Shown piece by piece: positions 5,338-36,784 of a stretch of DNA of 64,000 nt. Numbering within the stretch: the first letter of the stretch is position 1; every line of letters starts with the position of its first letter. The position numbers and the translations under genes are program-made. Where the stretch lies: sequence record KY499642.1; one strand, given 5' to 3'. The notes beneath the pieces are model-generated. The model made no database searches and was not told the DNA's origin. It saw nothing but the letters and a program-made list of their open reading frames with translations.

Positions 5338-5528
5338 TCGCCTATAACCCTATTACTACAATTTGGAAAAAGCAAAACGCTTTAAGTAGCGCTTCAAACG
5401 AAGTCGGCAATGACGCCCACTGGTACCCGGACTGATGCTTCATTAACACTATGCTATAGATGTTAACAAGCGGATGTCCGGTACATCCCTTTTATTTTTT
5501 TGTCTCCAGAGTAAAAAAATATTCAGAT

Positions 5529-5544
5529 ATATATCATTATGGTG
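5529..5544 (+). promoter_or_regulatory. Candidate early (virion-RNAP) promoter motif
   Basis: ATATATCAT-TATG-GTG, one of six copies of ATAT(T/A)TCAT-N4-GTG upstream of operon starts, preceded by an A-tract. Confidence 0.6.
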
Positions 5545-5579: not shown

Positions 5580-5933
5580 ATGGAACTATCTAAACTTGCA
5601 AAAGAACAACTTCTTAATTGGGATCACGATATCAACCCAACGCCACTAAAAGATATCGAGTACAACATTGCACACCACATCGCAGTTAATAAAGGATGGG
5701 GTCTAAGTAATGTTGCAGTGCAACTTACTGACAAGGTTCTGGATATCCGTGTTCAGAAATTTGCTACGTTCGGTAAAGGTGCATCATTCGGACAAACGTG
5801 CGATGGGTTCTGGTCAATGGAAGTCTATGTAGACTTCGACGACATTATTCCACGTGAACATCTGGGTCGAGTTAGTAACTGGTTACCAACGGGTGTATAC
5901 GCATTGGCCGACCACGTTAAGACAATTCACTAA
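5580..5933 (+). CDS. Hypothetical protein (likely early)
   Basis: GGGAG RBS, 117 aa, followed by a terminator. Confidence 0.75.
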   Translation: MELSKLAKEQLLNWDHDINPTPLKDIEYNIAHHIAVNKGWGLSNVAVQLTDKVLDIRVQKFATFGKGASFGQTCDGFWSMEVYVDFDDIIPREHLGRVSNWLPTGVYALADHVKTIH

Positions 5934-5941
5934 TTCACTTC

Positions 5942-5975
5942 GAGGAAGCTTCGGCTTCCTCACTACTTTTTATTT
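5942..5975 (+). terminator. Intrinsic terminator
   Basis: GAGGAAGC-TTCG-GCTTCCTC followed by ACTACTTTTTATTT. Confidence 0.65.
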
Positions 5976-5985
5976 GGAGATAATC

Positions 5986-6546
5986 ATGAGCAAAGTAACT
6001 TTAGAAATCCGCGAAGGTAAACTACGTCCAATCTACAACGGTGAAATCGTTGACCAACGTCACAACCTACTATTCGAATTGGATATCGCGTTAGGCAACC
6101 TTCCGCCATCGCCATGTCGTGGTGATGATGGTACAATCAATATTGAAGATGCAGTTGGCTACGTATTCATCAACATTGAAGATCGTCGTCAACGTTGTAT
6201 GGCACACCAAGCGGAGTACCGTGAGGTATTGCAGCAACTTAAAGCTGAAGTGCTGAAGTTCTATCACGAGTACAAAACTGACCCAACTGAGTACCACTTG
6301 GATTACATGTTGGAAGCGGCTAAACGTAATGGCGTTAAGTCAGTCTACCTTGACATGTTCTACGAAGGTAAGATATCACGTAACGATTTGAAGACTTGCT
6401 TCCTACGTGGTTCTTGTTCAACAATCGACCCGTCAATCTTCAGCGACCCATCACCTAAAGGCTTTGCAGTCCCGCCTGCACCGGAAGCACCAGCTGAGCC
6501 TGAATGTCAAACCTCTCACGAAAACTACGGCAAGGAGTCTAAGTAA
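5986..6546 (+). CDS. Hypothetical protein with Pro/Ala/Glu-rich C-terminus
   Basis: GGAG RBS before ATG 5986 (MSKVTLEIREG). The track's 5854 start overlaps the upstream gene and terminator. Confidence 0.75.
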   Translation: MSKVTLEIREGKLRPIYNGEIVDQRHNLLFELDIALGNLPPSPCRGDDGTINIEDAVGYVFINIEDRRQRCMAHQAEYREVLQQLKAEVLKFYHEYKTDPTEYHLDYMLEAAKRNGVKSVYLDMFYEGKISRNDLKTCFLRGSCSTIDPSIFSDPSPKGFAVPPAPEAPAEPECQTSHENYGKESK

Positions 6547-6923
6547 TGAACTGGTTCGTACACGGTACAAATAAAACAATCACTGAAGAATGGGATCACT
6601 GTGAGCATTTGAAAGTGGGTCAGGTTGCACCTTACATGGTCGGCGAGCAAGACTCGTTCGGCCCTGTGGCTCGCATGGGGATGTGTAAGGAGTGTCACGA
6701 TAAGTATAAAGCGGAGCAGGATGAAGAGCTAGAGTACTGTCATGACTGTGGGCAGGAAAAGCCTATGAAGGAAATGCGCGAATGGCGTTGGTACGACTTC
6801 TATGCACCTCAGGGCGATGAACCACTGATGATTTGCGATGACTGTGCGGTCAAAGACAAACACAAAGAACGTGTGCGTAAAGACAATGAAGCGTACGAAC
6901 GTGAAATGGGCGATGAGTATTAA
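6546..6923 (+). CDS. Zinc-finger protein, unknown function
   Basis: CxxC pairs CKEC, CHDC and CDDC plus CEH. AAGGAG RBS. TAATG overlap with the upstream gene. Confidence 0.75.
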   Translation: MNWFVHGTNKTITEEWDHCEHLKVGQVAPYMVGEQDSFGPVARMGMCKECHDKYKAEQDEELEYCHDCGQEKPMKEMREWRWYDFYAPQGDEPLMICDDCAVKDKHKERVRKDNEAYEREMGDEY

Positions 6924-6935
6924 TTGGGAGCTAAC

Positions 6936-7469
6936 ATGAAAGACAAAGTAGAAACAATCATTCAGGGTAAACGATACGTAGCCCGTGCAGTACAACAACC
7001 AGATAACAAAGTTGCATTCCACATCTACGACTTTCCTGATATCAACGGTCTGCCAGAGTCACGCATTACTCAGCTGGCTAAAGAGTTCGGCTTAGAGAAC
7101 AGCAAGAACTTCATCTGGTATGGACGTGACCACTTCGAGAAGCTGTATGGACAACAGCAGCAAGCACGTACTGGAATGTCTGGACGTTCGGTTATCACTG
7201 AACTGACTAAGTGCACATCGCCATATGAACATCATGTTCCATTCGCACGCATTTCACACATACTGGGTGATCACTTCCGTGGTGTTAATCCATTGGAAGA
7301 CGATGTACTGAAACAAATCATCGAGCACACACAACAGCACGTAGAGCGTCGCGGTAAAGAAGTTGCACATCAAGGACATTCAATGTCTATCAATGAGCAG
7401 CGTTACTTACTGAGCATTCTGCGCAGTTTGTTGCCTGCACTGATACCAGTTCCGGCTGAAGAGAAATAA
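6936..7469 (+). CDS. Hypothetical protein
   Basis: GGGAG RBS before ATG 6936. ORF ends at a bidirectional terminator. Confidence 0.75.
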   Translation: MKDKVETIIQGKRYVARAVQQPDNKVAFHIYDFPDINGLPESRITQLAKEFGLENSKNFIWYGRDHFEKLYGQQQQARTGMSGRSVITELTKCTSPYEHHVPFARISHILGDHFRGVNPLEDDVLKQIIEHTQQHVERRGKEVAHQGHSMSINEQRYLLSILRSLLPALIPVPAEEK

Positions 7470-8813: not shown

Positions 8814-8876
8814 AAGGACTCCCATATTTGTGATACACAGGATTTGCTGCCAGACGTATCCTAAATAGGTTCAGTT

Positions 8877-8892
8877 ATATTTCATTAATGTG
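8877..8892 (+). promoter_or_regulatory. Candidate early promoter motif
   Basis: ATATTTCAT-TAAT-GTG, 39 bp upstream of ATG 8931. Confidence 0.65.
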
Positions 8893-13863: not shown

Positions 13864-14565
13864 ATGAAACATTTACTGGCAGCCTTAGCGCTGCTGTTTG
13901 CCATGCAGGCAAACGCAATGGTGAAGTTATCGACCAGTGGTGGTATCTGCCACTCTGAAACCTCGCCCTACTATGACCGTATTGTGAACTACACGTCATA
14001 CCTGAATATGGAAACCTGCTCAGCGGAGTTAGGGTTCATGTTCGTTAAGAACTGCATTGATGATGGGAAATGTTACGACCCAGAGCCTGCACCTGACGGT
14101 TACGACCGTGAAAAGATGTTTGGTACATGGGATGACCCAGATGGCAACTGTTTGAATACACGCCATCAGCTACTGGCGATTACTTCTTACGATACGGTAG
14201 AGATTGAAGACTGTCGTGTTGTGTCAGGTAACTGGATATCACATTTCACCAACCTGACGATTACTGACCCGACTAAAATGGATATCGACCACATTGTACC
14301 TCTGTATCATGCATGGGCGCATGGGGCTGATAAGTGGACACAAGAGAAACGCGAAGCCTTTGCTACAGACACCGACAATTTGTGGCCTGTAGAGCTCTCT
14401 CTGAACCGAACGAAGTCTGACCGAGGGTTAGACTGGCTTCCGCCTAAGAACCAGTGTCAGTACATTCTGAAGTTCTTAAACATGGTTGAGAAGTATGACT
14501 TACTGTTCAGTGGGGAAGAACTCCAGTTCCATAAGAAGCAACGATTTGACTACTGTGGATTTTAA
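13864..14565 (+). CDS. Secreted HNH-family nuclease (DUF1524 / GmrSD C-terminal type)
   Basis: Sec signal peptide MKHLLAALALLFAMQANA. HNH core DIDHIVPLYHAW...NLWPVELSLNRTKSD. Several Cys that may form disulfides. Confidence 0.85.
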   Translation: MKHLLAALALLFAMQANAMVKLSTSGGICHSETSPYYDRIVNYTSYLNMETCSAELGFMFVKNCIDDGKCYDPEPAPDGYDREKMFGTWDDPDGNCLNTRHQLLAITSYDTVEIEDCRVVSGNWISHFTNLTITDPTKMDIDHIVPLYHAWAHGADKWTQEKREAFATDTDNLWPVELSLNRTKSDRGLDWLPPKNQCQYILKFLNMVEKYDLLFSGEELQFHKKQRFDYCGF

Positions 14566-14612: not shown

Positions 14613-15428
14613 TTACACTTTAACTTTGCCAGCACGGAAGATATGCTTGTTCTTCCGAGCAGGGTCGTTGAGTAGTAAGATAGTGTGCCATTTCTGATCG
14701 AGTAGGTCTTGGTACATCTGATGATGATCACTCCATTGGTCTACAAACTCTTTGTATCGACCAAAGTCACGACCACCCTCTAGACGCGTTCTATCCAATC
14801 CTAACGACAGTTCACGGTACAGGTAAGCCTTACATGCCACATTCACCAATTCCGCAAAGTCTTGGTAGTATGGGCGTTTGATTTCAAGTAAGTCATCCGT
14901 GTAACCAACTCGACACTCTAACGTGATATCAACCGAGAAGTTTTGATAGTCATTGATTTTGACTACGTTATCTCCTAGCAGTTCAACTTCCGCGTTCGTA
15001 ATATTTGGAATAGGACGATGGGAAGCATTAACTGACTGAATGCTACGTTCGAACGGGGACACAGTGAAAGCCTGTGTGGATTGTCCGGGTACACGTTCAG
15101 AGTAGTTTGACGTAACGTTAAGTGACACGCGGTTAACTTGGACGATTTCTCGACCCAGAGTCATATGACGTGGAATTACATAGATACGGCTGTAGTCTTC
15201 CAGCTTCTCATACGCAAGTCCTGACAACGGGATTTCAAGAGCAACGCCACCAATCGAGTCTAAGTCCGGCTTAATGAGATTCGCAATCAATTCATCACGA
15301 ATTTCACTGTCAACAGACTTACGACGACGACCCCAACGCTGTTCTTTTTTTCTGAATCCGTCTTCTAAAATCTCTTTCGGAATGTCCGAGAATTTGAGAC
15401 GGTTCAGAGCATGCTCTATAGCGTTCAT
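14613..15428 (-). CDS. Conserved phiKZ-like protein, probably virion structural
   Basis: Start ATG 15428 (MNAIEHALNRL) with AAGGAGG RBS. Type recalled as conserved upstream of the polymerase block in chimalliviruses. Confidence 0.6.
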   Translation of the reverse strand: MNAIEHALNRLKFSDIPKEILEDGFRKKEQRWGRRRKSVDSEIRDELIANLIKPDLDSIGGVALEIPLSGLAYEKLEDYSRIYVIPRHMTLGREIVQVNRVSLNVTSNYSERVPGQSTQAFTVSPFERSIQSVNASHRPIPNITNAEVELLGDNVVKINDYQNFSVDITLECRVGYTDDLLEIKRPYYQDFAELVNVACKAYLYRELSLGLDRTRLEGGRDFGRYKEFVDQWSDHHQMYQDLLDQKWHTILLLNDPARKNKHIFRAGKVKV

Positions 15429-15535
15429 AGAACCCTCCTTCATCGCAGTCATAGCATGGCTTAAGCTTACGTAAATAATAACATAACAGCGATTCCTATA
15501 GGGGAGTTTGGCTATGAATAAAAGTATTGTCAGAC

Positions 15536-15551
15536 ATATTTCATCATAGTG
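15536..15551 (+). promoter_or_regulatory. Candidate early promoter motif driving the nine-gene array
   Basis: ATATTTCAT-CATA-GTG, 22 bp upstream of ATG 15573. Confidence 0.65.
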
Positions 15552-15572
15552 ATGAATCCTTGGAGATAATAA

Positions 15573-15926
15573 ATGCGACTTATAATTTTACAATTTGAAG
15601 TTGCACCTTTCTTAGACGAATATGAAAACAAATTTGGTGAATTACCAGATGGTTGCGAGATAAATGATTTTGCTGTAATGGTAATGCTTTCCATAATGCA
15701 TAGACATTGTATCTTGATGTTAACTGATGATGCTTTTCACACCTACGAGAAACGTGGGGTTGGATTTCGCAACATGGTGGATGACATCGTAGAGAACTTA
15801 GTCTTTGAGCCTGAACACTCTGCATTGTACCACATATCAGAATACGCTCGCACCTTCAGAGGTATACTAGCCATATCTAAAGTTCGTTTAAGAAGAAAAC
15901 GAACGTTTGAGGTGTACTGTGAATAA
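15573..15926 (+). CDS. Hypothetical protein, array member 1
   Basis: GGAG RBS. Pattern: N-terminal strand, helices, C-terminal strands. Confidence 0.7.
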   Translation: MRLIILQFEVAPFLDEYENKFGELPDGCEINDFAVMVMLSIMHRHCILMLTDDAFHTYEKRGVGFRNMVDDIVENLVFEPEHSALYHISEYARTFRGILAISKVRLRRKRTFEVYCE

Positions 15927-16593
15927 ATTTACATATAACATTGAACCATTCTACCAACAGGTTCGCGACTTTATCGCTAACCGTGCTGACCTGTTTACTG
16001 GTCTGGAAGAGATGTTTGATGATCCCGTCAACTTTGACCATGATCCGTCTAAACCACTATCGCTGTTTGAAGCGACAGAAAACCGCCGTGATATCACGGA
16101 GGAATATCTAGATAAGTTAGAGAGCTTCCAACGCGACCTGACTCAGGAACTCATTCATGCCGTTCTGTGTGAGTATTTCTACTCAATCCCAGAAGGGTAC
16201 GACAATCGTTTCTACATGCTAGGTAAACAGTCCATCAATCAGTGTCAGTATGCTGACGTGAAAACATGGTACAAGGTCTGTCGTGCGGCTGGACGACAAG
16301 ACGCGCATGTACTCCTGTTGGATGAAAACGAAAACGTTGAGGATAGCGTACCTATCGGAATCCGCAATGAAGACGTTCGCCGAATCTTCCACGAATTGTT
16401 TGTAGCATTCCTTTGTGAGCTACGACATGCCCTGCCTGATAACACATGGGCTACGGTAGATTTTAAGGTCAGTGGCAATACAATGACGCTAACCTTCGGT
16501 GAGGACTTAAGGCATGTTATCTTTGAACGTGAACACGGTACCGATAAATGGAAAGGGCCGTACTACCTTCCGACAGGAGAGATTATCGAATAG
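15919..16593 (+). CDS. Hypothetical protein, array member 2
   Basis: GAGG RBS and GTG 15919 overlapping the upstream stop. Acidic. Confidence 0.7.
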   Translation: MNKFTYNIEPFYQQVRDFIANRADLFTGLEEMFDDPVNFDHDPSKPLSLFEATENRRDITEEYLDKLESFQRDLTQELIHAVLCEYFYSIPEGYDNRFYMLGKQSINQCQYADVKTWYKVCRAAGRQDAHVLLLDENENVEDSVPIGIRNEDVRRIFHELFVAFLCELRHALPDNTWATVDFKVSGNTMTLTFGEDLRHVIFEREHGTDKWKGPYYLPTGEIIE

Positions 16594-16975
16594 TCGCGTA
16601 AGGTTAACAATTAAGGACATTTATTGTGGGGTTGAAGGCAAACTTGACGAGTTCGATTATCGTTACGATAGTACGGATGTTGAAGAGTTTGTCGCCTCAG
16701 TTTTGGACATGTATCTAGACACGGCTGACCGTGGATTTGGTAGAGCAGCTGTCGATATGATAGCAGCACACGAAATCTTTCTAGCACTCATGGAATCAAA
16801 AGACGCGAAGCGAGTATCGCGTACTCATTCACAACACGTAGTGCAGTTCATCTTGGCTGAATTGAACGACTACGTCAGAACGTTCGACATCGTTCGTGTG
16901 TATGACTACACCATTTACGGGACACAGTTGGTAATGGATTGTCTCCGTAGAATGCAGATAAGAGCTGTCGCTTAA
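16514..16975 (+). CDS. Hypothetical protein, array member 3
   Basis: 153 aa. Start uncertain (80-nt overlap with member 2). Confidence 0.6.
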   Translation: MLSLNVNTVPINGKGRTTFRQERLSNSRVRLTIKDIYCGVEGKLDEFDYRYDSTDVEEFVASVLDMYLDTADRGFGRAAVDMIAAHEIFLALMESKDAKRVSRTHSQHVVQFILAELNDYVRTFDIVRVYDYTIYGTQLVMDCLRRMQIRAVA

Positions 16976-16989
16976 CACAGGAGCTAATA

Positions 16990-17361
16990 ATGCACAAACG
17001 TAAACGCAGTGCGTATGTGTTTAATTTGAGTGTCTTACAGGACCTTAGTGAAGACCTCATGGAGTACGACATCTATGAGTGTTTTGGTGAAAATATTGAT
17101 AACTATGATTTCATCCGTACACTAATTAAGGCATCTCTATCAACACGCAATGAGTTAGAAGCACATCTTAAAGCAAGTATGTTCTTCTTCCAATACATCG
17201 ACAAGTCTGAACAGGATCATTGTCGCCGTTTAGTAAACGAAATCATGCAACTACCAGATTACGAGTATCTCATTGATATCATTCGTAACTCGGTGGGTAG
17301 TCGTGCGTATCGGTACCCGTCGGTTGAAGTTAAAGGTGAGAGATTGGTGGTGAAGGTGTAA
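16990..17361 (+). CDS. Hypothetical protein, array member 4
   Basis: AGGAG RBS. Ends in SVEVKGERLVVKV, a predicted beta-hairpin. Confidence 0.7.
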   Translation: MHKRKRSAYVFNLSVLQDLSEDLMEYDIYECFGENIDNYDFIRTLIKASLSTRNELEAHLKASMFFFQYIDKSEQDHCRRLVNEIMQLPDYEYLIDIIRNSVGSRAYRYPSVEVKGERLVVKV

Positions 17362-17768
17362 TGGATATTGTGGTTGGTATTGTGCCATATCACAGACGTC
17401 TAGCTTTAGCCATCGACGATTACTACGATGATATCGTTCAGGGTAATAGCACGACAACGGCTGTGAGGCGTGCAGATATATACACTATGTTAACGATCAT
17501 TATGAAAGTGTCAGTGGTTGACTATATGTCGGATATTGCATCAATGGCATCCGAGTCCATATACCAACACTTGAACCTTAAGTATGGGGCATCCATGCTT
17601 ATGATTTCACACATGGTCAATGAGATAATAGAATCTGACGAGTATAGGGAAATACGAAATCGGATTAACACTAGCGTTGCACAAACATCTGACCGACACT
17701 TAGGTGTCAATGATGTAACCCTTACTTGGAACATGAGTAAGGTTGTGATTAACGTTGCCAGACGATGA
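17361..17768 (+). CDS. Hypothetical protein, array member 5
   Basis: TAATG coupling. Ends in DVTLTWNMSKVVINV. Confidence 0.7.
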   Translation: MDIVVGIVPYHRRLALAIDDYYDDIVQGNSTTTAVRRADIYTMLTIIMKVSVVDYMSDIASMASESIYQHLNLKYGASMLMISHMVNEIIESDEYREIRNRINTSVAQTSDRHLGVNDVTLTWNMSKVVINVARR

Positions 17769-18255
17769 GGCGATTATGAGAGTAACGGTTCGTATACATG
17801 ATTTTAATGACTACTTTATGGAGCTTATTCCATTCAGTCAAGCGTTGGACAACACGCGTATTGTCCAGTGTCTAATTGATGACCTAAACGGTCTACTTAA
17901 TTTAAGTCAAGCGGTTGCCAGAGAGGAGCCTGTTGACTATCGAAAGATTTCAAATACGTTAGAGTACCTGACGAAAGACGCTGAGAATTTCATCAGTGAA
18001 GCTGGTATGGTTCACATGAAGAACGCTGTTGGTGACCTGATGAAAGTGTTCTTTGAAGAGCTTCGTGGGTACGCTCGTTGGACTAACATGCGTTTCCGCT
18101 ATGTTCGTCACCAAGAGTCAAGTTCTGGTTCGTGGACTATACGTATGGATGCTGAAGACCAATTTGATTACAATGATAGAGTTTGTGATCTTATGATGGA
18201 ATTGGCAGAACGATTACTGGAGCAATTCTGTGTTAAAGATGACCGTAGGTATTAG
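17755..18255 (+). CDS. Hypothetical protein, array member 6
   Basis: 166 aa. The true start may be the internal ATG (MRVTVRI) after GAGG. Confidence 0.7.
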   Translation: MPDDEAIMRVTVRIHDFNDYFMELIPFSQALDNTRIVQCLIDDLNGLLNLSQAVAREEPVDYRKISNTLEYLTKDAENFISEAGMVHMKNAVGDLMKVFFEELRGYARWTNMRFRYVRHQESSSGSWTIRMDAEDQFDYNDRVCDLMMELAERLLEQFCVKDDRRY

Positions 18256-18643
18256 CGGACTTCTAAGATTAATCGAACGCAAGCTGAAAAAGTTTCGCCT
18301 ACCTACAGGTGGGATTACCAGAAAAGAGGAGCAGCAGATAATGGAGCTGCTCATCTTGCGCTTTATTTGTCGTGACGATGCCCGCATTAGAAGACTGTCA
18401 TCACCAACTGTAATCCGTGTGTTTGATAAGCTTACCAAAGGCGATAATAACTCTTCAGGAGACTGGGAGTTGTTAGATGAGCTGCATTATTACGGTGAGT
18501 TGGTGGGTGATATGGTGATGAGATATTACGACTACGAAGGTGATGGAATTGGCTATAACTGTGAAGTACATTACAGCCTACGTAGACGAAGAATAAGCAT
18601 AGAGGGAACATCCGAATGTCTAAGAAGAAAATTAGGCAGGTAA
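18230..18643 (+). CDS. Hypothetical protein, array member 7
   Basis: 137 aa, overlapping both neighbours. Ends in CEVHYSLRRRRISIEG. Confidence 0.6.
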   Translation: MLKMTVGISGLLRLIERKLKKFRLPTGGITRKEEQQIMELLILRFICRDDARIRRLSSPTVIRVFDKLTKGDNNSSGDWELLDELHYYGELVGDMVMRYYDYEGDGIGYNCEVHYSLRRRRISIEGTSECLRRKLGR

Positions 18644-19353
18644 GAGTTTGTCTGAAAGAACACATGCGTGATATTGAGGATATCGTTGCTAACATGTGTG
18701 ATAAACTGAGTGACTTGCCAGATAGCTTTAGACGCCCTATTGAAGAGGGCGTTGTGTACATGGCGTTGTTTGACTCTGGTTACAATGACGAAGATTTCTG
18801 GGAGAATGTCGCTGACTACCTAACCGAAGTGTTTAGCCATTACTTCGAGAGCCAGACCGACTTCACAGATACAATGCCAAGAAGTAAGTTGACACGTCTC
18901 GCACCAACTAGACTTGATATTCTAGATGGAACGGATACTGACGATGATCTATTAATTTCTGACATTGATGATAATGATGGTGAAAGGATTGAGTACGTTG
19001 TCGGAGTTAGTGATGAGATTCCTCACCACTACCACTGGGATAGCCGTGAAGATATGGACTACACCGCTGAGATTGTTGCAGAACAAGTAGCGGAGATGTT
19101 CGCAGAGTACGACTTAGCATCTGATGATGACTTCGCTGAACTAGCGTGCGTGATTCGTGATGCTGCCCTTGGTGACCAATACACTGTCAAGAACGTTGAC
19201 CGTTTCACTATTGATATGAACCGTAAGAAACTTATGGTGGGTATCGATACGGGTTCTCGGTTAGCCAATATGGATATGTCACTTTTTAATCGATTTGAGG
19301 TAGACGATGCGTTATCTGTTCGGAATGGATCGCGAAGTCGTCGAGCATCTTAG
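18616..19353 (+). CDS. Hypothetical protein, array member 8 (very acidic)
   Basis: GAGGG RBS, 245 aa. Ends in RFTIDMNRKKLMVGI plus an RS-rich tail. Confidence 0.7.
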   Translation: MSKKKIRQVRVCLKEHMRDIEDIVANMCDKLSDLPDSFRRPIEEGVVYMALFDSGYNDEDFWENVADYLTEVFSHYFESQTDFTDTMPRSKLTRLAPTRLDILDGTDTDDDLLISDIDDNDGERIEYVVGVSDEIPHHYHWDSREDMDYTAEIVAEQVAEMFAEYDLASDDDFAELACVIRDAALGDQYTVKNVDRFTIDMNRKKLMVGIDTGSRLANMDMSLFNRFEVDDALSVRNGSRSRRAS

Positions 19354-19879
19354 AGAGGCTTGGGATTACCTTGATATGGAGTACAACTTAGATTTATGGC
19401 CTACAGTAAAGCCTACGATTGAGTTGTGTCTCCATACCACCGTACATGAATTGATTTCATTGCACTATATACTAGACTACGATTTAGAAGAGTATCTTCA
19501 CAATTGTAACTGGCACCACGTTGATGATTACATCGGGGCTATCTTTGATTCAGGTAGACACGAGGAACTCTTCGACGATGTGATTGATGCTCTAGAGTCA
19601 AACGTATACGCGGGTAACAAGCTTGCCGTATCTGTCAGCCGTAAAAGCCGATGTATACGTCATGCTAACATCCTAGATGAGCCTGTCGAATATGACTACG
19701 ATGATTTACAGCGATCGTTGGCTAATGCAGTCACTGATGCAATCATAGACGCACTTAGAACAGTAGAGATACTTGACTATTTGCCTAAGGTTGAAAATGA
19801 ACTAGCTCCAAGATATCGTATGCCGATACAGGATGTTGATATCAACTTCCGTAAACTAAAGCTTACAATACGACACTAG
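19307..19879 (+). CDS. Hypothetical protein, array member 9
   Basis: GAGG RBS, 190 aa. Ends in DVDINFRKLKLTIRH. Confidence 0.7.
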   Translation: MRYLFGMDREVVEHLREAWDYLDMEYNLDLWPTVKPTIELCLHTTVHELISLHYILDYDLEEYLHNCNWHHVDDYIGAIFDSGRHEELFDDVIDALESNVYAGNKLAVSVSRKSRCIRHANILDEPVEYDYDDLQRSLANAVTDAIIDALRTVEILDYLPKVENELAPRYRMPIQDVDINFRKLKLTIRH

Positions 19880-19888
19880 GAGATAGCC

Positions 19889-20308
19889 ATGGCCGATATC
19901 AGTGGACTTAAAATGGGACAGGTTGTCTCGTTTAAGCTGCACACTAAACTGATCTCCGACATCTTTACTAACGTGAAGGTGCTCGGTATCGTTGGCTACG
20001 ATGTAGCAACCGCATTTGAAGATGTGGCTGCTGTACATGCTAACATCTACTCAACCCTCCCAGAGGGTACACCAGAGAACGCTGAAGACTACGACTACTT
20101 GTATGTTGAGACAATCGACAAGCAACGTAAGGTGGTGGGTGTTCCTTGGATTAAAGACCCAATCTCAGTAGTTGACTCAGCTACAATTCGAGTCACACTG
20201 AATAATGCTACAACCTCAGACGTTGAGAAGGTCCGCAATGCACTAAACGCATACGGCTACATCGACCTGAGTATTGAAGTGTTAAGTGGGTCTAGTATAC
20301 AGTCCTAG
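19889..20308 (+). CDS. Conserved chimallivirus SH3-like beta-barrel protein upstream of DNA polymerase
   Basis: AGGAG RBS. GQVVSFKL...VKVLGIV...YLYVET...VVGVPWI strand pattern. Fold is inferred. Confidence 0.6.
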   Translation: MADISGLKMGQVVSFKLHTKLISDIFTNVKVLGIVGYDVATAFEDVAAVHANIYSTLPEGTPENAEDYDYLYVETIDKQRKVVGVPWIKDPISVVDSATIRVTLNNATTSDVEKVRNALNAYGYIDLSIEVLSGSSIQS

Positions 20309-20336
20309 TAATAATTTAAATGGAAGGCTATAATGT

Positions 20337-20483
20337 GAACAAATCTATCTCCCAATTAGTTTGTTCTATTGTGAGTCGCATTTCAGTCCCTGCAAATGCG
20401 ATTTACCTGTCCACTAAATTTTCTAGGACTTATGTCCTCCTTATGAAGCCAGCACCCGTTTTGGGTGTTGGTATTTTTTTTTT
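20337..20483 (+). ncRNA. Candidate ~145-nt sRNA with C-rich (anti-SD-like) loops
   Basis: TATAAT at 20329-20334, hairpins at 20337-20366 and 20376-20401, CCTCCTTA at 20436-20443, intrinsic terminator at 20449-20483, no ORF with an RBS. Confidence 0.45.
20449..20483 (+). terminator. Intrinsic terminator
   Basis: CCAGCACCC-GTTTT-GGGTGTTGG followed by TA and a T10 tract. Confidence 0.85.
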
Positions 20484-20555
20484 GTCTTAATGTAAAAAGT
20501 AATGCTGCTGCTTTTGATTTGTAGAACTAACTAAAACAAATTCCCAGAGGCAAAA

Positions 20556-22727
20556 ATGTCATTATTCTTACGACCGGACGAAGAATACGTTCGTGAAATA
20601 AATGTCATGGAAGGCTACATGAAACAGTTGGCTGAATACCTGCACATACAGACAGGTAAGCCGATGGATGTGGTTAAACCATGGTTAAAGAAAGAATTCG
20701 AATCTGATGAGGGTCGATTCAAGTTTGAGTCCCCTATTGCAGATATCAACGTACGTGACCCACAAACTGGTGACCGTAAAGCAACACGTATCTCAGTGGC
20801 TAAGCTACTGGCTATGACGGAAAAGAATGACATCATCACGTCACCGTCACTGACCTTTTATACGCCAGCAAAGAAGAAGCGCTCACTGCTGTCTGTCTTC
20901 ATCGATGAAAACATCGCTAAGCGTGCAAAAGTAAAGAAAGAGATGTTCGCAGCTCAGGCTGAAGGTGATGAGGTAAAAGCTCAGAACAAAAAGAACGAAC
21001 AGAACTCATTTAAGACATTGAACAACGCAACCTCTGGTGCACACTCGTCTCCATATACCCTGCTGTTCAATAAGTCTACTCACTCATCACTAACATCAAC
21101 TTGTCGTTCGGCTACCTCGTATGGTAATGCAAACAACGAGAAGTTACTGGCAGGCTCACGTCACTACTGGATGCCGGGTATTGTTATCAACAATATCTTG
21201 TCTACTATTACCCTGACAGACTTCGATGCGTTCCAAGGATGTGTTGATGAATACAACCTGCACTACCCAACAGCAGAAGAGACAATGGAGTGTATTGAAT
21301 ACTCTACTCATCTGTTCTGGAATAACGTAGCAGCTATGGATCATATCCGCGACTTCGTGGGTAAGCTTACTCCGATTCAACGCGCTGCGTTCGTCTACAT
21401 CGGCGACCTATACCACCTACGTAAACACAACCCTGATGTGGTTCGTGGTTGGATTGGTTCAATGATTGAAGAGACAAATGAAAAGGTTCCCGTAGAGGAA
21501 GTGGAGCACGTCGAGAAAGTTACCGATGGTGACTTGACTGCTCTAGTCGCACTATTACGTGCAGACATTGTCGGCCCTCGAAACCTCCGTAAAGTAAAAG
21601 AGCAAGACTTTGAAGATTACCGTATTCTAATGTCTACGTGTCTTAAAGTTCGAGAAGCATGTGAAAAGTACTCAACGCTGATTCGTGAGATTATGACCAC
21701 GAAGAACGTGCCTGCCTCGATTGCTCGATTACCTGACACTATTCGTCGTGTATCACTGGTATCGGATACTGACTCAACAATGGCTACAGCTCAACGATGG
21801 TCAGAGTGGTTCTGTGGTGAGATGACGGGTAAGACTGCGGACAACGTTGCAGATACAATGATCTACATTGCAACGCAAAACATCGCGCACATGATGGCAC
21901 GTATGTCTACGCAGATGGGGGTGGAGAAACAGTACTTGCATCGCTACTCAATGAAGAACGAATTTAAGTTCAGTTCTTTCGCACTAACAAATAAAGCGAA
22001 GCATTACTTCTCACTAATCACTTCTCAAGAGGGTACTCTTTTCGAAGATCCTGAATTGGAAGTAAAAGGTGTGGCGTTACGCACGTCAAACATTCCACCA
22101 ATCATCATGAACGAGTTCCGTGCGACGATTCGTGAGTTGTCACGTTTGGTTATGGTAGGGGAAGATATTGAGATTGTTCCGCTGCTAGAGCGTGTGGGTG
22201 ACATTGAGCACAGCATCGTACGCTCGGTACACAATGGTGACTACCAGTACTTGAAGACTGGTCAGGTGAAAGATAAGACAGCCTACTCTAAACCAGAGCA
22301 GTCTAACTTCATCTACTGGGAGTGGTGGGAAACAACGTTCGGTCCTAAATACGGTTCGGCGGGTTCACCGTCATATAGCGTAGTTAAGATTTCTGTTGAC
22401 CTTGGAAACAAGACATTGATTAAACGATGGATTGATAACATGAAAGACAGGGAGTTGGCGGGACGTATTCAGGAATGGCACCTAAGAAACCCGAAACGTA
22501 AATTCACGCAGTTACTACTACCGGAAACAGTTGTAGCAACCAATGGTATTCCAAAAGAGATTTTGGACATTGCGGATTACCGTCGAATCATCTTTGCATC
22601 AGTTGAACCATACTACCATGTGTTAGAATGTTTCAAAGTGATGATGATTGACAAGAACCGTACGCGAATGGTTTCGGACTTCTATGGTGAACCAATTGAG
22701 AGTGAACTAACGGAGAGTACTGCATAG
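20556..22727 (+). CDS. Family-B DNA polymerase, polymerase half (phiKZ gp50-like)
   Basis: Motif B region QNSFKTLNNATSGA, motif C VSDTDST, downstream KHYF and EVKGV. No exonuclease or motif A in this ORF. Confidence 0.85.
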   Translation: MSLFLRPDEEYVREINVMEGYMKQLAEYLHIQTGKPMDVVKPWLKKEFESDEGRFKFESPIADINVRDPQTGDRKATRISVAKLLAMTEKNDIITSPSLTFYTPAKKKRSLLSVFIDENIAKRAKVKKEMFAAQAEGDEVKAQNKKNEQNSFKTLNNATSGAHSSPYTLLFNKSTHSSLTSTCRSATSYGNANNEKLLAGSRHYWMPGIVINNILSTITLTDFDAFQGCVDEYNLHYPTAEETMECIEYSTHLFWNNVAAMDHIRDFVGKLTPIQRAAFVYIGDLYHLRKHNPDVVRGWIGSMIEETNEKVPVEEVEHVEKVTDGDLTALVALLRADIVGPRNLRKVKEQDFEDYRILMSTCLKVREACEKYSTLIREIMTTKNVPASIARLPDTIRRVSLVSDTDSTMATAQRWSEWFCGEMTGKTADNVADTMIYIATQNIAHMMARMSTQMGVEKQYLHRYSMKNEFKFSSFALTNKAKHYFSLITSQEGTLFEDPELEVKGVALRTSNIPPIIMNEFRATIRELSRLVMVGEDIEIVPLLERVGDIEHSIVRSVHNGDYQYLKTGQVKDKTAYSKPEQSNFIYWEWWETTFGPKYGSAGSPSYSVVKISVDLGNKTLIKRWIDNMKDRELAGRIQEWHLRNPKRKFTQLLLPETVVATNGIPKEILDIADYRRIIFASVEPYYHVLECFKVMMIDKNRTRMVSDFYGEPIESELTESTA

Positions 22728-23771: not shown

Positions 23772-23802
23772 TCGTAGACCCCTATTCCAAAAAAATTTAA
23801 GT

Positions 23803-23818
23803 ATATTTCATTGTAGTG
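23803..23818 (+). promoter_or_regulatory. Candidate early promoter of chmA
   Basis: ATATTTCAT-TGTA-GTG preceded by an A7 tract. Confidence 0.7.
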
Positions 23819-27372: not shown

Positions 27373-27990
27373 ATGGCGAACGTAATGCGTGGAGTAGGAA
27401 ACGAAGGTGTTCGTGATATCCTTTACTCTCGACCGAAACGTCTTCTTGAAGATTATCATGAAGAAGTATTTGGCGATGAAGGTATTGCACGAAACTTCTC
27501 CGAACGTTTCCGAGAACGGGCTAAGGCGAAGATCGATCGTCTCAAAAGTAGTCGTGCTATTCGTGCAGCGTCTGCTACATTCCGTAAACTTCGTAACCGT
27601 GGTCGTTTAGACCGCATCGAATGTCTACTAGATGTAGGTGCACTGCAACATGCGCCACCGCGTATGCAATCACTGATTATGGCGAACCCTAATGTTCGTC
27701 GTCGTTGGCAGAAGCGTACTTTGGCTGGCTACGAGAATGGTTATAACTTGCGTGCGGACCAACGCAATTCAATTAAGCATTCACACTCAACATATCGTAT
27801 GATAATGGATGGACTTGTGCAAGAGGATGAGGGTAAACATGTATCACATACTTACGCTCTAACTCAAGCCGAGAAAGACAACCTTTCATACAAAGACAAA
27901 GCGGAAATCCGTCAGACATGGGCACGTGTCGATGAGATGCTCTGGGAGAATCTTGAAGATCCGACCTCAGAGTACAACGCAATGTTGTAA
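27373..27990 (+). CDS. Conserved core hypothetical protein (phiKZ gp59-like position, possible import cofactor)
   Basis: 205 aa, Arg-rich, directly after nvRNAP beta'. Synteny only. Confidence 0.55.
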   Translation: MANVMRGVGNEGVRDILYSRPKRLLEDYHEEVFGDEGIARNFSERFRERAKAKIDRLKSSRAIRAASATFRKLRNRGRLDRIECLLDVGALQHAPPRMQSLIMANPNVRRRWQKRTLAGYENGYNLRADQRNSIKHSHSTYRMIMDGLVQEDEGKHVSHTYALTQAEKDNLSYKDKAEIRQTWARVDEMLWENLEDPTSEYNAML

Positions 27991-31235: not shown

Positions 31236-31877
31236 ATGTCCCACATCAATGAAAACGTTCTTCAGCTACGTACTCGTGCAAATGGCGGTCGTCCGACTCT
31301 AATGAAAATCAACCCTAACCGTTACAACCGTGTTTCGTTCTCAGCACGTGTAGGTGAAGGTTGGGTGAACGCAGACCTAACAATCGATGCGTGGAAAGAT
31401 TTCTGTAACTACATCCGTATGGCTACACGCCTTAAAGAAGCGGATAGCTTTGCAATCCAGCTTAAGAAGAAAGAGCAGGTTTACGCAGTAGTAGTAGTTG
31501 GCCGTGATGATGACGGTCTGGTTTACGTTGAACTGGCTAACACAGGTGGCAACAAAGTTCGCTTTGACTTCCTGCCTAAGCATCAGTTCATCCACATGCG
31601 CTCTGGTAAACCAATGCCAGAGTCTGAACTGTCTCGTAACCGTGCAATGGCATGGGCTGATCTGGTTGAGCCAATGGTTATTGAACTGTGGAAACGTGAC
31701 TACAAAACCGATGATGCTGGTCCACAAGGCGGCGGTCAACGCGGTAACTACAATGGCGGTGGTAACCGTGGTGGTTATAACAACGGTGGTGGCAACCGTG
31801 GTAACTACGGCGGTGGTAACCAGCCACAAGCACAGCCTCAAGCAATCGATGGCGACTTAGACGATTACCTACCATAA
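31236..31877 (+). CDS. chmC: ChmC, shell-associated RNA/ssDNA-binding protein (phiKZ gp67-like)
   Basis: Beta-rich core plus Gly/Asn/Arg disordered tail (GGGNRGxY-like x3) and acidic tip. Immediately upstream of the sigma-like subunit and picA. Confidence 0.72.
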   Translation: MSHINENVLQLRTRANGGRPTLMKINPNRYNRVSFSARVGEGWVNADLTIDAWKDFCNYIRMATRLKEADSFAIQLKKKEQVYAVVVVGRDDDGLVYVELANTGGNKVRFDFLPKHQFIHMRSGKPMPESELSRNRAMAWADLVEPMVIELWKRDYKTDDAGPQGGGQRGNYNGGGNRGGYNNGGGNRGNYGGGNQPQAQPQAIDGDLDDYLP

Positions 31878-33591: not shown

Positions 33592-35160
33592 ATGAACTTT
33601 ATCAGTCTTAAGCTTATCGAAGTTGGCGGTCTAGAGAAACAATCTCGCCGAGTATTTGAGTGGCAACGCTCAGGTAACTTCGTTAACGATATTGTTGATG
33701 TGGTTGAGCGTACTGGCGGACGTCTAAGCGTAGACAGCTTCGTTGGTATTGCATCTGATGCATTGACCATCTCAACAGACGTTGAGGAGGTTTATGTACC
33801 GGGCATTGGTAGCGGACGTGATTGGGAAGAGCGCCGTTTCCGTTTCTTCTTAGAGATGGAGCTAGAACCAATGACTCGCTATAATAAGAAGCGTACTCGC
33901 GCTCTTATTCAGGGCTACACCGACCACTCAGACTTGTCACATAACGACAAGGTCGACCCTAAGATGAAGATGTACATCAACAACGTAACTACTGTTCAGG
34001 ATTTCTCTGACGGTGCTCGTGGTACAGTTACCCGTGTTGTTGACGTATCTCAAACGCTACTGGGCGACATGTCCCGTGGTGAAGATTTCCTACTCCGTCC
34101 ATCGGATGTATTTGCACGTATCGAGAATAAAGAAGACTCGATTGCAGATGACTTGGAACTGGATGTAATGGTTGATACTCGTAGTTCGTTCCACTCGGGT
34201 ACTCAGCTAAACGATCGTCGTAGTAATGCATCAAGCAACTACCTGCACAAGTTGGTAACATCAGACTTGGATGCAGCTGCGAATATCGAAACGCGTGACA
34301 TGGGTATTATCCAAGATAACCGTGACACATTAGCGTATGAAACTGCTGGCGGTAATATCCAGACTGTACGTTCGAACAAGTTCCTACGTGCATTGGCTGA
34401 CAAGAACCGTAACTTCAAGTTCTCTAACTACTTCACTTACGCGGACTTAGCGGAGTTCGCAGGTAGTATCAAATCGCTTGACCGTGATACTGACATCATT
34501 CTACCAGATGGTTTTGGTGAGTTTGAATCAGAGCACTGGGATGGTGCAACAGCTGAAGTTAAAGCAGCGGCTCAGGTATGTCACCTGATCCCGATTATCA
34601 TGATTGACTGTTTCATGGATTCAGTCTCGTTCACAATCAGTAACAACGATTGTCGCGGCGATCAATCTGACATGGTAATCGAAGACATGACATCTATGCT
34701 AGGTGAGAACGTCCGTTCTCGTGACCATATCCGTGCATTCGAGACTCGCGTTAAACGTGAAGTGTTCTCTCAAATCACGAACAATGGCCACATGTGTGTT
34801 GACATGGATGTTGACTCAGAGATGTGTGGTATCACAATCATTGAAATCTCAATTGATGGTGACCCGTATGACCGTTACGTATTCCCATCATTCGCAGATG
34901 GTCTGCTATCTCCAGTTGTTACCAACGATGGTGAGAACGCAGAAGACATGGCAGATGGTTACATCGAAGTGCGTAAGCATGTAGATGAAGTAATTGGTCG
35001 TCACCAAGACATCTCACTAAGTACAGATGTACGTTCAGCCGTACGCGACCGTGACCGTCGCTCTCCTCGCTCTGAGCGTCGTCGTAGTAATGATGCACTA
35101 CTAGATGACGATATTCTAGGCGGTGGCAATTTTAAACTTTCTAATTTGGATGATCTATAA
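33592..35160 (+). CDS. picA: PicA/Imp1, phage-nucleus protein import factor (phiKZ gp69-like)
   Basis: 522 aa following the sigma-like subunit. RRFRFFLEME, LRPSDVF and YVFPSFADGLLSPV blocks recalled from this family. Synteny. Confidence 0.72.
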   Translation: MNFISLKLIEVGGLEKQSRRVFEWQRSGNFVNDIVDVVERTGGRLSVDSFVGIASDALTISTDVEEVYVPGIGSGRDWEERRFRFFLEMELEPMTRYNKKRTRALIQGYTDHSDLSHNDKVDPKMKMYINNVTTVQDFSDGARGTVTRVVDVSQTLLGDMSRGEDFLLRPSDVFARIENKEDSIADDLELDVMVDTRSSFHSGTQLNDRRSNASSNYLHKLVTSDLDAAANIETRDMGIIQDNRDTLAYETAGGNIQTVRSNKFLRALADKNRNFKFSNYFTYADLAEFAGSIKSLDRDTDIILPDGFGEFESEHWDGATAEVKAAAQVCHLIPIIMIDCFMDSVSFTISNNDCRGDQSDMVIEDMTSMLGENVRSRDHIRAFETRVKREVFSQITNNGHMCVDMDVDSEMCGITIIEISIDGDPYDRYVFPSFADGLLSPVVTNDGENAEDMADGYIEVRKHVDEVIGRHQDISLSTDVRSAVRDRDRRSPRSERRRSNDALLDDDILGGGNFKLSNLDDL

Positions 35161-36744: not shown

Positions 36745-36768
36745 GATGGCCTCTATTTAATTTAAGAT

Positions 36769-36784
36769 ATATTTCATTGAAAGG
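36769..36784 (+). promoter_or_regulatory. Candidate early promoter motif (variant)
   Basis: ATATTTCAT-TGAA-AGG upstream of nvRNAP beta. Confidence 0.55.

Follow-up and report, generated by a model that had tools for sequence, protein, structure and literature searches.

A Chimalliviridae-wide array of small proteins upstream of the DNA polymerase gene of Vibrio phage pVa-21, with a possible role in nuclear import

Introduction

How the protein shell of a phage nucleus selects the proteins that enter it is the main open question on phage nuclei, and to our knowledge no linear import signals are known there. An operon that may bear on this question was analysed in a 64,000-nucleotide (nt) stretch of DNA (the window), which gave a 100% match to Vibrio phage pVa-21 (KY499642). 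This phage is a phiKZ-like, nucleus-forming Vibrio jumbo phage (chimallivirus). The operon (positions 15573–20308) was composed of nine tightly packed plus-strand open reading frames (ORFs), A1–A9, and a tenth gene, SH3DP. The original prediction had described the nine as a translationally coupled set of acidic, similarly built proteins behind one early promoter, and had proposed that they were ancient tandem paralogues of one fold, possibly serving as interchangeable cargo adaptors for nuclear import. The locus raises the questions of how widely such an array is kept, whether its members are related to each other and to known import factors, and what they may do for the phage.

Conservation of the array

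Related loci were fetched from viral and metagenome contigs by using the polymerase gene as an anchor. All 64 loci shared one order, a gp42-like gene on the minus strand, 5 to 12 small plus-strand ORFs depending on the clade, SH3DP, and the polymerase gene. The same layout was confirmed in the annotations of phiKZ, PhiPA3, 201phi2-1, and Psa21. The array is a Chimalliviridae-wide operon, of which pVa-21 carries its copy. Across the 64 loci, each array position formed a separate sequence family with a fixed place relative to SH3DP. Because these families were stably placed, nine fixed and distinct roles fitted the data better than the interchangeable adaptors that had been proposed.

Gene number and order were stable in the SPN3US-like clade, where eight ORFs (~107, 215, 147, 135, 170, 170–190, 145, and 200 amino acids (aa)) ran parallel in size to those of pVa-21. 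The gp257–gp250 block of SPN3US itself (Seoulvirus, Erwinia relatives) had the same layout and orientation. In this block, gp256 and gp253 were clear orthologues of A2 and A6, with hhalign probabilities of 95% and 77–92% for the respective families, and the remaining positions had no detectable sequence similarity to pVa-21.

The equivalent block of phiKZ was gp43–gp48, followed by gp49 (SH3DP) and gp50 (polymerase), which gave six or seven genes compared with nine in pVa-21. In the import paper, orf47 and orf48 of phiKZ were named imp2 and imp4. The statement in the original prediction that a phiKZ import cofactor maps upstream of gp50 was therefore accurate, as both Imp2 (orf47) and Imp4 (orf48) lie directly upstream of gp49 and gp50. 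A 142-aa ORF between gp42 and gp43 of phiKZ (17900–18328 in locus L003) had no annotation in NC_004629. Annotated homologues were located at the same place in 201phi2-1 (gp74), Psa21 (PSA21_38), Viktualia, and PS119XW, and this ORF is probably a genuine gene, overlooked so far, with which the phiKZ array begins.

The sole close relative of the window in the phage collection was pVp-JHP1101, with 80% nt identity. It kept all nine ORFs, with ratios of nonsynonymous to synonymous substitution (dN/dS) of 0.05–0.22, indicating purifying selection. A1–A9 were therefore regarded as real genes and not as chance reading frames. All nine ORFs, together with every N- and C-terminal peptide quoted for them beforehand, were recovered at their coordinates. 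The pVp-JHP1101 record annotates all nine genes, whereas the deposited KY499642 annotation covers five (A1, A3, A5, and A7 are absent) and starts A6, A8, and A9 at internal codons, shortening at least three genes. The pVa-21 annotation is corrected here for four missed genes and at least three truncated ones. When compared with one same relative, the nine array proteins were 26–48% identical and the polymerase was 70% identical; the array proteins diverge much faster than the polymerase.

The neighbourhood of the SH3 and polymerase genes was noted by Iyer et al., who did not note the array (PMC7824862), and a literature search found no account of the array as a set of structurally related proteins present throughout the family.

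Composition of the array

Neighbouring array genes overlapped by 1–80 nt or were separated by gaps of 7–14 nt, in agreement with the overlapping or nearly abutting frames described at the outset, and a GGAG-like Shine-Dalgarno sequence preceded every array gene. Translational coupling is plausible rather than demonstrated, because the TAATG junction of A4 and A5 was the sole classic coupling overlap. The isoelectric point (pI) was 4.4–5.9 in eight of the nine proteins; A7, with a pI of 9.4, was basic and departed from the acidic character ascribed to the whole set. The genes of the operon are as follows, with dN/dS values calculated against pVp-JHP1101.

15573–15926, plus strand: A1, 117 aa, pI 5.5, dN/dS 0.08, orthologues in 7 loci
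15919–16593, plus strand: A2, 224 aa, pI 4.7, GTG start, dN/dS 0.11
16514–16975, plus strand: A3, 153 aa, pI 5.9, dN/dS 0.19, orthologues in 7 loci
16990–17361, plus strand: A4, 123 aa, pI 5.6, modelled with AlphaFold2
17361–17768, plus strand: A5, 135 aa, pI 5.7, dN/dS 0.22, start overlapping the A4 stop (TAATG)
17776–18255, plus strand: A6, 159 aa, pI 4.9, modelled with AlphaFold2, orthologue of SPN3US gp253
18230–18643, plus strand: A7, 137 aa, pI 9.4, dN/dS 0.13, orthologues in 5 loci
18616–19353, plus strand: A8, 245 aa, pI 4.4, dN/dS 0.08
19307–19879, plus strand: A9, 190 aa, pI 4.8, dN/dS 0.15
19889–20308, plus strand: SH3DP, final gene of the operon, 139 aa, homologue of phiKZ gp49

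The SH3-like gene that was expected to close the array matched the Pfam SH3DP family (PF20287) with 125.6 bits (cut-off 25) and an expectation value (E) of 1.1e-36. It also matched phrog_3235 (E = 9e-39) and phiKZ gp49 (BLAST, E = 6e-11). Pfam and PHROGs scans of A1–A9 gave nothing above noise.

A2, which overlaps A3 by 80 nt, belongs by its sequence to the phiKZ gp43/SPN3US gp256 family, with 42 members across 40 loci. It matched phiKZ gp43 by BLAST (E = 5e-4) and with an hhalign probability of 14–21%. The homologues phiKZ gp43, PhiPA3 gp39, and 201phi2-1 gp75 occupied the equivalent position, close to where the array begins; however, gp43-like proteins are 305–365 aa long compared with 224 aa for A2, and the alignment was only partial. 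The A5 family was present in only 3 loci and was missing from one relative, L005. In BLAST, the C-terminal part of A5 was weakly similar to A4 (E = 0.013). A8 contained an acidic insert and a 35-aa tail beyond the hairpin-like segment. Orthologues of A8 and of A9 were each found in 10 loci, A8 second from SH3DP and A9 adjoining it every time.

Predicted structures of the array proteins

AlphaFold2 models covered two of the nine proteins, A4 and A6, and were searched against BFVD with Foldseek. The A4 model had a predicted local distance difference test (pLDDT) score of 93.7 and a predicted template modelling (pTM) score of 0.87, and was composed of a strand (residues 8–12), six helices, and a hairpin (residues 111–115 and 118–122). 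The A6 model (pLDDT 92.9, pTM 0.87) contained a strand (residues 2–7), a helical body of two long helices and several short ones, a hairpin (residues 105–114 and 120–128), and a C-terminal helix (residues 134–153). As modelled, A4 and A6 share a build of N-terminal strand, helices, and C-terminal hairpin, but the number and length of their helices are different. The other seven were assessed with a crude predictor based on propensity and periodicity and calibrated on A4 and A6. It reproduced the terminal strands of these two and gave the strand and hairpin pattern in all nine, including the N-terminal strand and C-terminal hairpin of A1. The pattern was enriched over background ORFs with odds ratios of 2–4, a weak indication because the sequences are non-independent and the ORF starts over-extended. 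The proposed strand–helices–hairpin layout was thus borne out by AlphaFold2 for A4 and A6, and rests on the crude predictor for the rest.

The BFVD neighbours of both models were almost exclusively small proteins of chimallivirus jumbo phages, and 12 targets were common to both. Wherever the annotation of the phage was available, the named hits were all located within the array of that phage, as follows.

PhiPA3 039 (gp43 homologue) and 044 (Imp2 homologue): identified by gene name
201phi2-1 gp78 and gp79 (Imp2 homologue): identified by exact length and consecutive accessions
Psa21_38, 39, 40, and 43: identified by exact length
SL2 178-aa protein: identified by its length match to the SL2 Imp2 orthologue, which is 98.9% identical to gp47

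Imp2 orthologues were among the structural neighbours of both models, at moderate similarity. The SL2 178-aa Imp2 orthologue was matched by A4 with a probability of 0.98 and a query template modelling score (TMq) of 0.53, and by A6 with a probability of 0.94 and a TMq of 0.49. The A6 model also matched PhiPA3 044 (probability 0.87, TMq 0.42). The A4 model aligned with the gp43 homologue PhiPA3 039 over ~136 columns (probability 0.99, TMq 0.57). No identified Imp4-family target was present among the hits of either model.

The template modelling scores (TM-scores) of the two models to other array proteins were 0.35–0.6. This likeness is one of architecture and probably of fold, which is not proof of one fold. 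Neither model recovered the family of the other among its top 50 Foldseek hits. A single fold for the array is unproven, because the two models have unlike numbers of helices and neither is a close structural neighbour of the other. Their neighbours were array proteins from several positions, Imp2 homologues included. When the A6 model was used for a fold search of the Protein Data Bank (PDB), the best hit had an E of 0.32. Sequence searches of the PDB, run for the A4 and A6 profiles as well as for phiKZ gp47 and gp48, yielded either designed helical proteins only or no hit at all. The array models point to a fold without a solved relative.

Sequence relationships among array proteins

Profile comparisons of the pVa-21 array gave orthology between same positions only. 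Neither BLAST nor profile–profile comparison detected homology between any pair of A1–A9, and the best cross-position hhalign probability was ≤5%, so that the paralogy expected within pVa-21 did not appear at this level. When the A4 profile was searched against 1.84 billion representative proteins, 16 matches were obtained; 15 of them were of matching length (117–157 aa) and were A4 orthologues, and no bridge to other array positions was found. The sixteenth match was to eight stretches of a 1713-aa protein, P0010 (E = 2.4e-8). P0010 is possibly a helical repeat protein, and similar composition could account for the match. A link between A2 and A8, suggested when the A2 profile matched the A8 orthologue of L005, was rejected at a family-to-family hhalign probability of ~1%.

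Tandem duplication was detected in another chimallivirus clade, from metagenomes, in which the three ORFs nearest SH3DP aligned mutually with hhalign probabilities of 93–98% over ~118 columns. Judged by these alignments, the three ORFs are tandem paralogues, the clearest duplication in arrays of this kind, at the following loci.

L070, 7405–9030: three SH3DP-proximal tandem paralogues; equivalents in L071, L077, L090, L100, L119, and L126

The fourth position of this clade reached 84% with an iterated profile only, and that profile already contained one member of its family. A tie of A6 to the paralogue group, seen with an iterated hidden Markov model, was treated as weak because the non-circular seed-alignment test gave only 4–9%; the value of 97% was circular. 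In a further array (L095), positions 7 and 9 from SH3DP fell in one sequence cluster, and this pair would be a recent within-array duplication.

Profile scores between array families were slightly higher than those between array and control families (median 14.2 vs. 12.3, p = 1.6e-4), a shift that could also stem from shared helical composition. The score shift and the paralogues of the L070-type clade point towards common descent of array proteins. Tandem paralogy, first proposed for the nine proteins of pVa-21, was demonstrable in another clade and was undetectable by sequence among those nine.

Limits of the transcription unit

The operon is bounded by the following features.

14613–15452, minus strand: gp42-like gene, divergent upstream boundary, 279 aa, matching phiKZ gp42 with phmmer (E = 4e-26)
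15535–15546, plus strand: AT-rich promoter-like motif CATATTTCATCA, 27 nt upstream of the A1 start codon
20448–20481, plus strand: intrinsic terminator closing the operon before the polymerase gene, a 10-base-pair GC-rich stem followed by ten T
20556–22727, plus strand: B-family DNA polymerase, 38% identical to phiKZ gp50
5528–5539, 8876–8887, 23802–23813, and 36768–36779, plus strand: further copies of YATATWTCATYR, upstream of operon starts

The AT-rich block lay in the 120-nt intergenic region between the gp42-like gene, which was found in this position in all 64 loci, and A1, and seven relatives have kept it in the orthologous intergenic region. The pattern YATATWTCATYR had five exact matches in the 64 kb, all five on the plus strand and each at most ~80 nt upstream of an operon start. 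Three of the four further copies adjoined a divergent minus-strand gene, and the copy at 23802 preceded the chimallin gene (23889). From their placement, these copies are candidate promoters of one class. In such phages, early promoters have been described as AT-rich motifs of ~10 nt (PMC7598289), and chimallin is an early gene in the chimalliviruses studied (PMC12908238). Because the motif was conserved and recurred at operon starts, including that of a gene that is early elsewhere, it is a reasonable inference that 15535–15546 is a candidate early (virion RNA polymerase) promoter. For the single early promoter of the original prediction, this conserved motif, found again ahead of four other operon starts, provides a candidate rather than a demonstrated promoter. 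A sigma-70 promoter scan gave sites no more numerous than in shuffled sequence, as expected because the phage uses its own polymerases.

At the downstream end, the terminator hairpin (20448–20472) had a folding energy of -18.2 kcal/mol (z = -5.3 vs. shuffles). The polymerase gene, which the pVp-JHP1101 record assigns to family B, starts 248 nt downstream of the SH3DP gene. A 56-aa ORF between the two (20320–20490) spans the terminator hairpin and is probably no gene.

A second operon, at 5580–7469, is located behind the same YATATWTCATYR motif and contains four small ORFs (117, 230, 125, and 181 aa). These have sizes like those of A1 and A2 and showed no BLAST similarity to any array protein, so that the operon was rejected as a second copy of the array.

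Proposed role in nuclear import

The core importer genes of the nucleus-forming phages were represented in the window by three homologues.

33592–35160, plus strand: Imp1/PicA homologue (phmmer with PhiPA3 gp63, E = 4.5e-29)
27373–27990: Imp3 homologue (phmmer with PhiPA3 gp55, E = 4.6e-17)
31236–31877: Imp6/ChmC homologue (phmmer with PhiPA3 gp61, E = 6.2e-11)

By these matches, pVa-21, like phiKZ, encodes the core importer set Imp1/PicA, Imp3, and Imp6. The cargo-specific factors known so far, Imp2, Imp4, Imp5, and Imp7, are all from phiKZ, and in the later literature Imp2, Imp4, and Imp5 are described as cargo-specific adaptors. Imp2 localises inside the phage nucleus, the known phiKZ clients are the RecA-like recombinase gp152 and host TopA, and a transposon screen gave no disruptive insertions in imp2 or imp4. 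Similar to the pVa-21 array, Imp2 and Imp4 occupy the slot between the gp42-like gene and SH3DP/polymerase and are small (127–178 aa). All nine array proteins are therefore candidates for nuclear-entry selection, on the strength of the Imp2/Imp4 slot and of the similar build that A4 and A6 appear to share with Imp2 homologues. By analogy with these factors, we infer, tentatively and with somewhat less than even confidence, that the array proteins may be cargo-specific escorts for nuclear import. This reading would fit an operon beside the polymerase gene, given that gp152 (RecA-like) and TopA are the phiKZ clients known. Further points in its favour are the motif YATATWTCATYR common to the array and the chimallin gene, the homology of A2 to gp43, the core importer set encoded by pVa-21, and the fast divergence of the nine proteins relative to the polymerase.

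According to this proposal, each escort would be made early, in the cytoplasm, and would bind one client through a variable helical surface. The likely clients would be replication or recombination proteins of phage or host. The escort would then hand this client over to Imp1/PicA, the importer bound to the shell, and may enter together with the client. The small sheet, assumed to be built from the terminal strands, would be the conserved core, and co-evolution with clients and PicA surfaces would account for the rapid divergence. The arrangement may be likened, by analogy only, to eukaryotic karyopherin/importin adaptors, which are related escorts with their own clients and one common gate. 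However, their folds are unrelated to those of the array proteins, and entry into the phage nucleus is through a protein lattice with PicA instead of a pore complex.

Several observations weigh against the escort reading. The array proteins had no detectable sequence homology to Imp2 or Imp4 (gp47 and gp48), with no match in all-against-all BLAST and hhalign probabilities of ≤1.5%, and the similarity of the A4 and A6 models to Imp2 homologues was moderate (TM-score 0.42–0.53). Import phenotypes are available for only two genes of the phiKZ block gp43–gp48. A fixed family at each position, with stable place and number, could equally mean the subunits of one machine, and co-transcription with SH3DP beside the polymerase gene also fits a replication role. 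A difference from pVa-21, where the role is a candidate one, is that Imp2, Imp4, and Imp5 have been reported as confined to Pseudomonas phages.

Such a replication role would make the array proteins accessory factors of replication or recombination inside the nucleus, acting with SH3DP and the split B-family polymerase, and the import phenotypes of Imp2 and Imp4 would be indirect, for example through client stabilisation or formation of a pre-import complex. In every locus the array runs in the same direction as SH3DP, which has been proposed as a possible polymerase subunit (PMC7824862), and lies directly upstream of the polymerase gene. Moreover, Imp2 is found inside the nucleus with a RecA-like recombinase as its client, and chimalliviruses have no recognisable primase and lack several other replisome parts. 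This explanation is nevertheless considered unlikely, since a strong terminator stands between the operon and the polymerase gene, and since pairwise structure predictions of the polymerase subunit Rhc across all of phiKZ gave only gp50, gp140, and PicA as likely partners and none of the array proteins. Furthermore, no nucleic-acid-binding or enzymatic domain was detected with Pfam, PHROGs, or the PDB fold search, and core replisome subunits do not usually diverge so fast. Alternatively, all nine proteins and possibly SH3DP could be co-translated subunits of one hetero-oligomeric complex, such as a PicA-associated import complex or scaffold. The eight genes of matching size and stable order across the SPN3US-like clade are consistent with such a complex, packed and overlapping frames suit balanced co-expression, and exposed edge strands of the small sheets, inferred from the models, could pair between subunits. 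The variation of the array from 5 to 12 ORFs between clades, the absence of A5 from L005, and the different, cargo-specific phenotypes of phiKZ Imp2 and Imp4, in place of one common phenotype, make this the least probable explanation considered.

A quite different explanation is that the array holds unrelated early genes for host take-over or anti-defence, with small size, acidity, and alpha/beta layout coincidental and the synteny functionally meaningless. No pairwise homology was found among the nine, the A4 and A6 models differ in helix count and each lacks the family of the other in its top 50 hits, TM-scores to other array proteins are mostly 0.35–0.6, and host-interaction genes typically evolve fast too. 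However, the Foldseek hits were highly specific to chimallivirus array genes among viral structures, with 12 targets shared, and three to four tandem paralogues were present in another clade (hhalign 93–98%). The array-versus-array profile scores exceeded those against controls (p = 1.6e-4), and the operon at 5580–7469, behind the same motif, had no BLAST similarity to the array. The slot was also kept across Vibrio, Pseudomonas, Erwinia, and Ralstonia hosts, which is unexpected for host-specific weapons. This coincidence of unrelated genes appears rather improbable.

If Imp2/Imp4/Imp5-type factors do belong to a syntenic, structurally related set common to all chimalliviruses, each chimallivirus would carry 5–12 candidate escorts beside its polymerase gene, and the link between escort and client would be testable in several hosts. 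A more far-reaching form of the escort reading holds that the whole array, in all nucleus-forming phages, derives from one ancestral gene and is an import-escort family, of which Imp2 and Imp4 would be diverged, pan-Chimalliviridae members. Each paralogue would then license one replication or recombination client at a distinct PicA surface. This form is doubtful; if true, it would provide a viral counterpart of the importin families.

Neighbouring genes

In phiKZ, gp42, the homologue of the upstream neighbour of the array, gave a strong phenotype in an antisense screen (PMC12571901). Beyond the gp42-like gene, an annotated HNH endonuclease of 233 aa is encoded at 13864–14565. Its N-terminus resembles a cleavable signal peptide, with a hydrophobic stretch leading to ANA, which is unusual for a phage nuclease.

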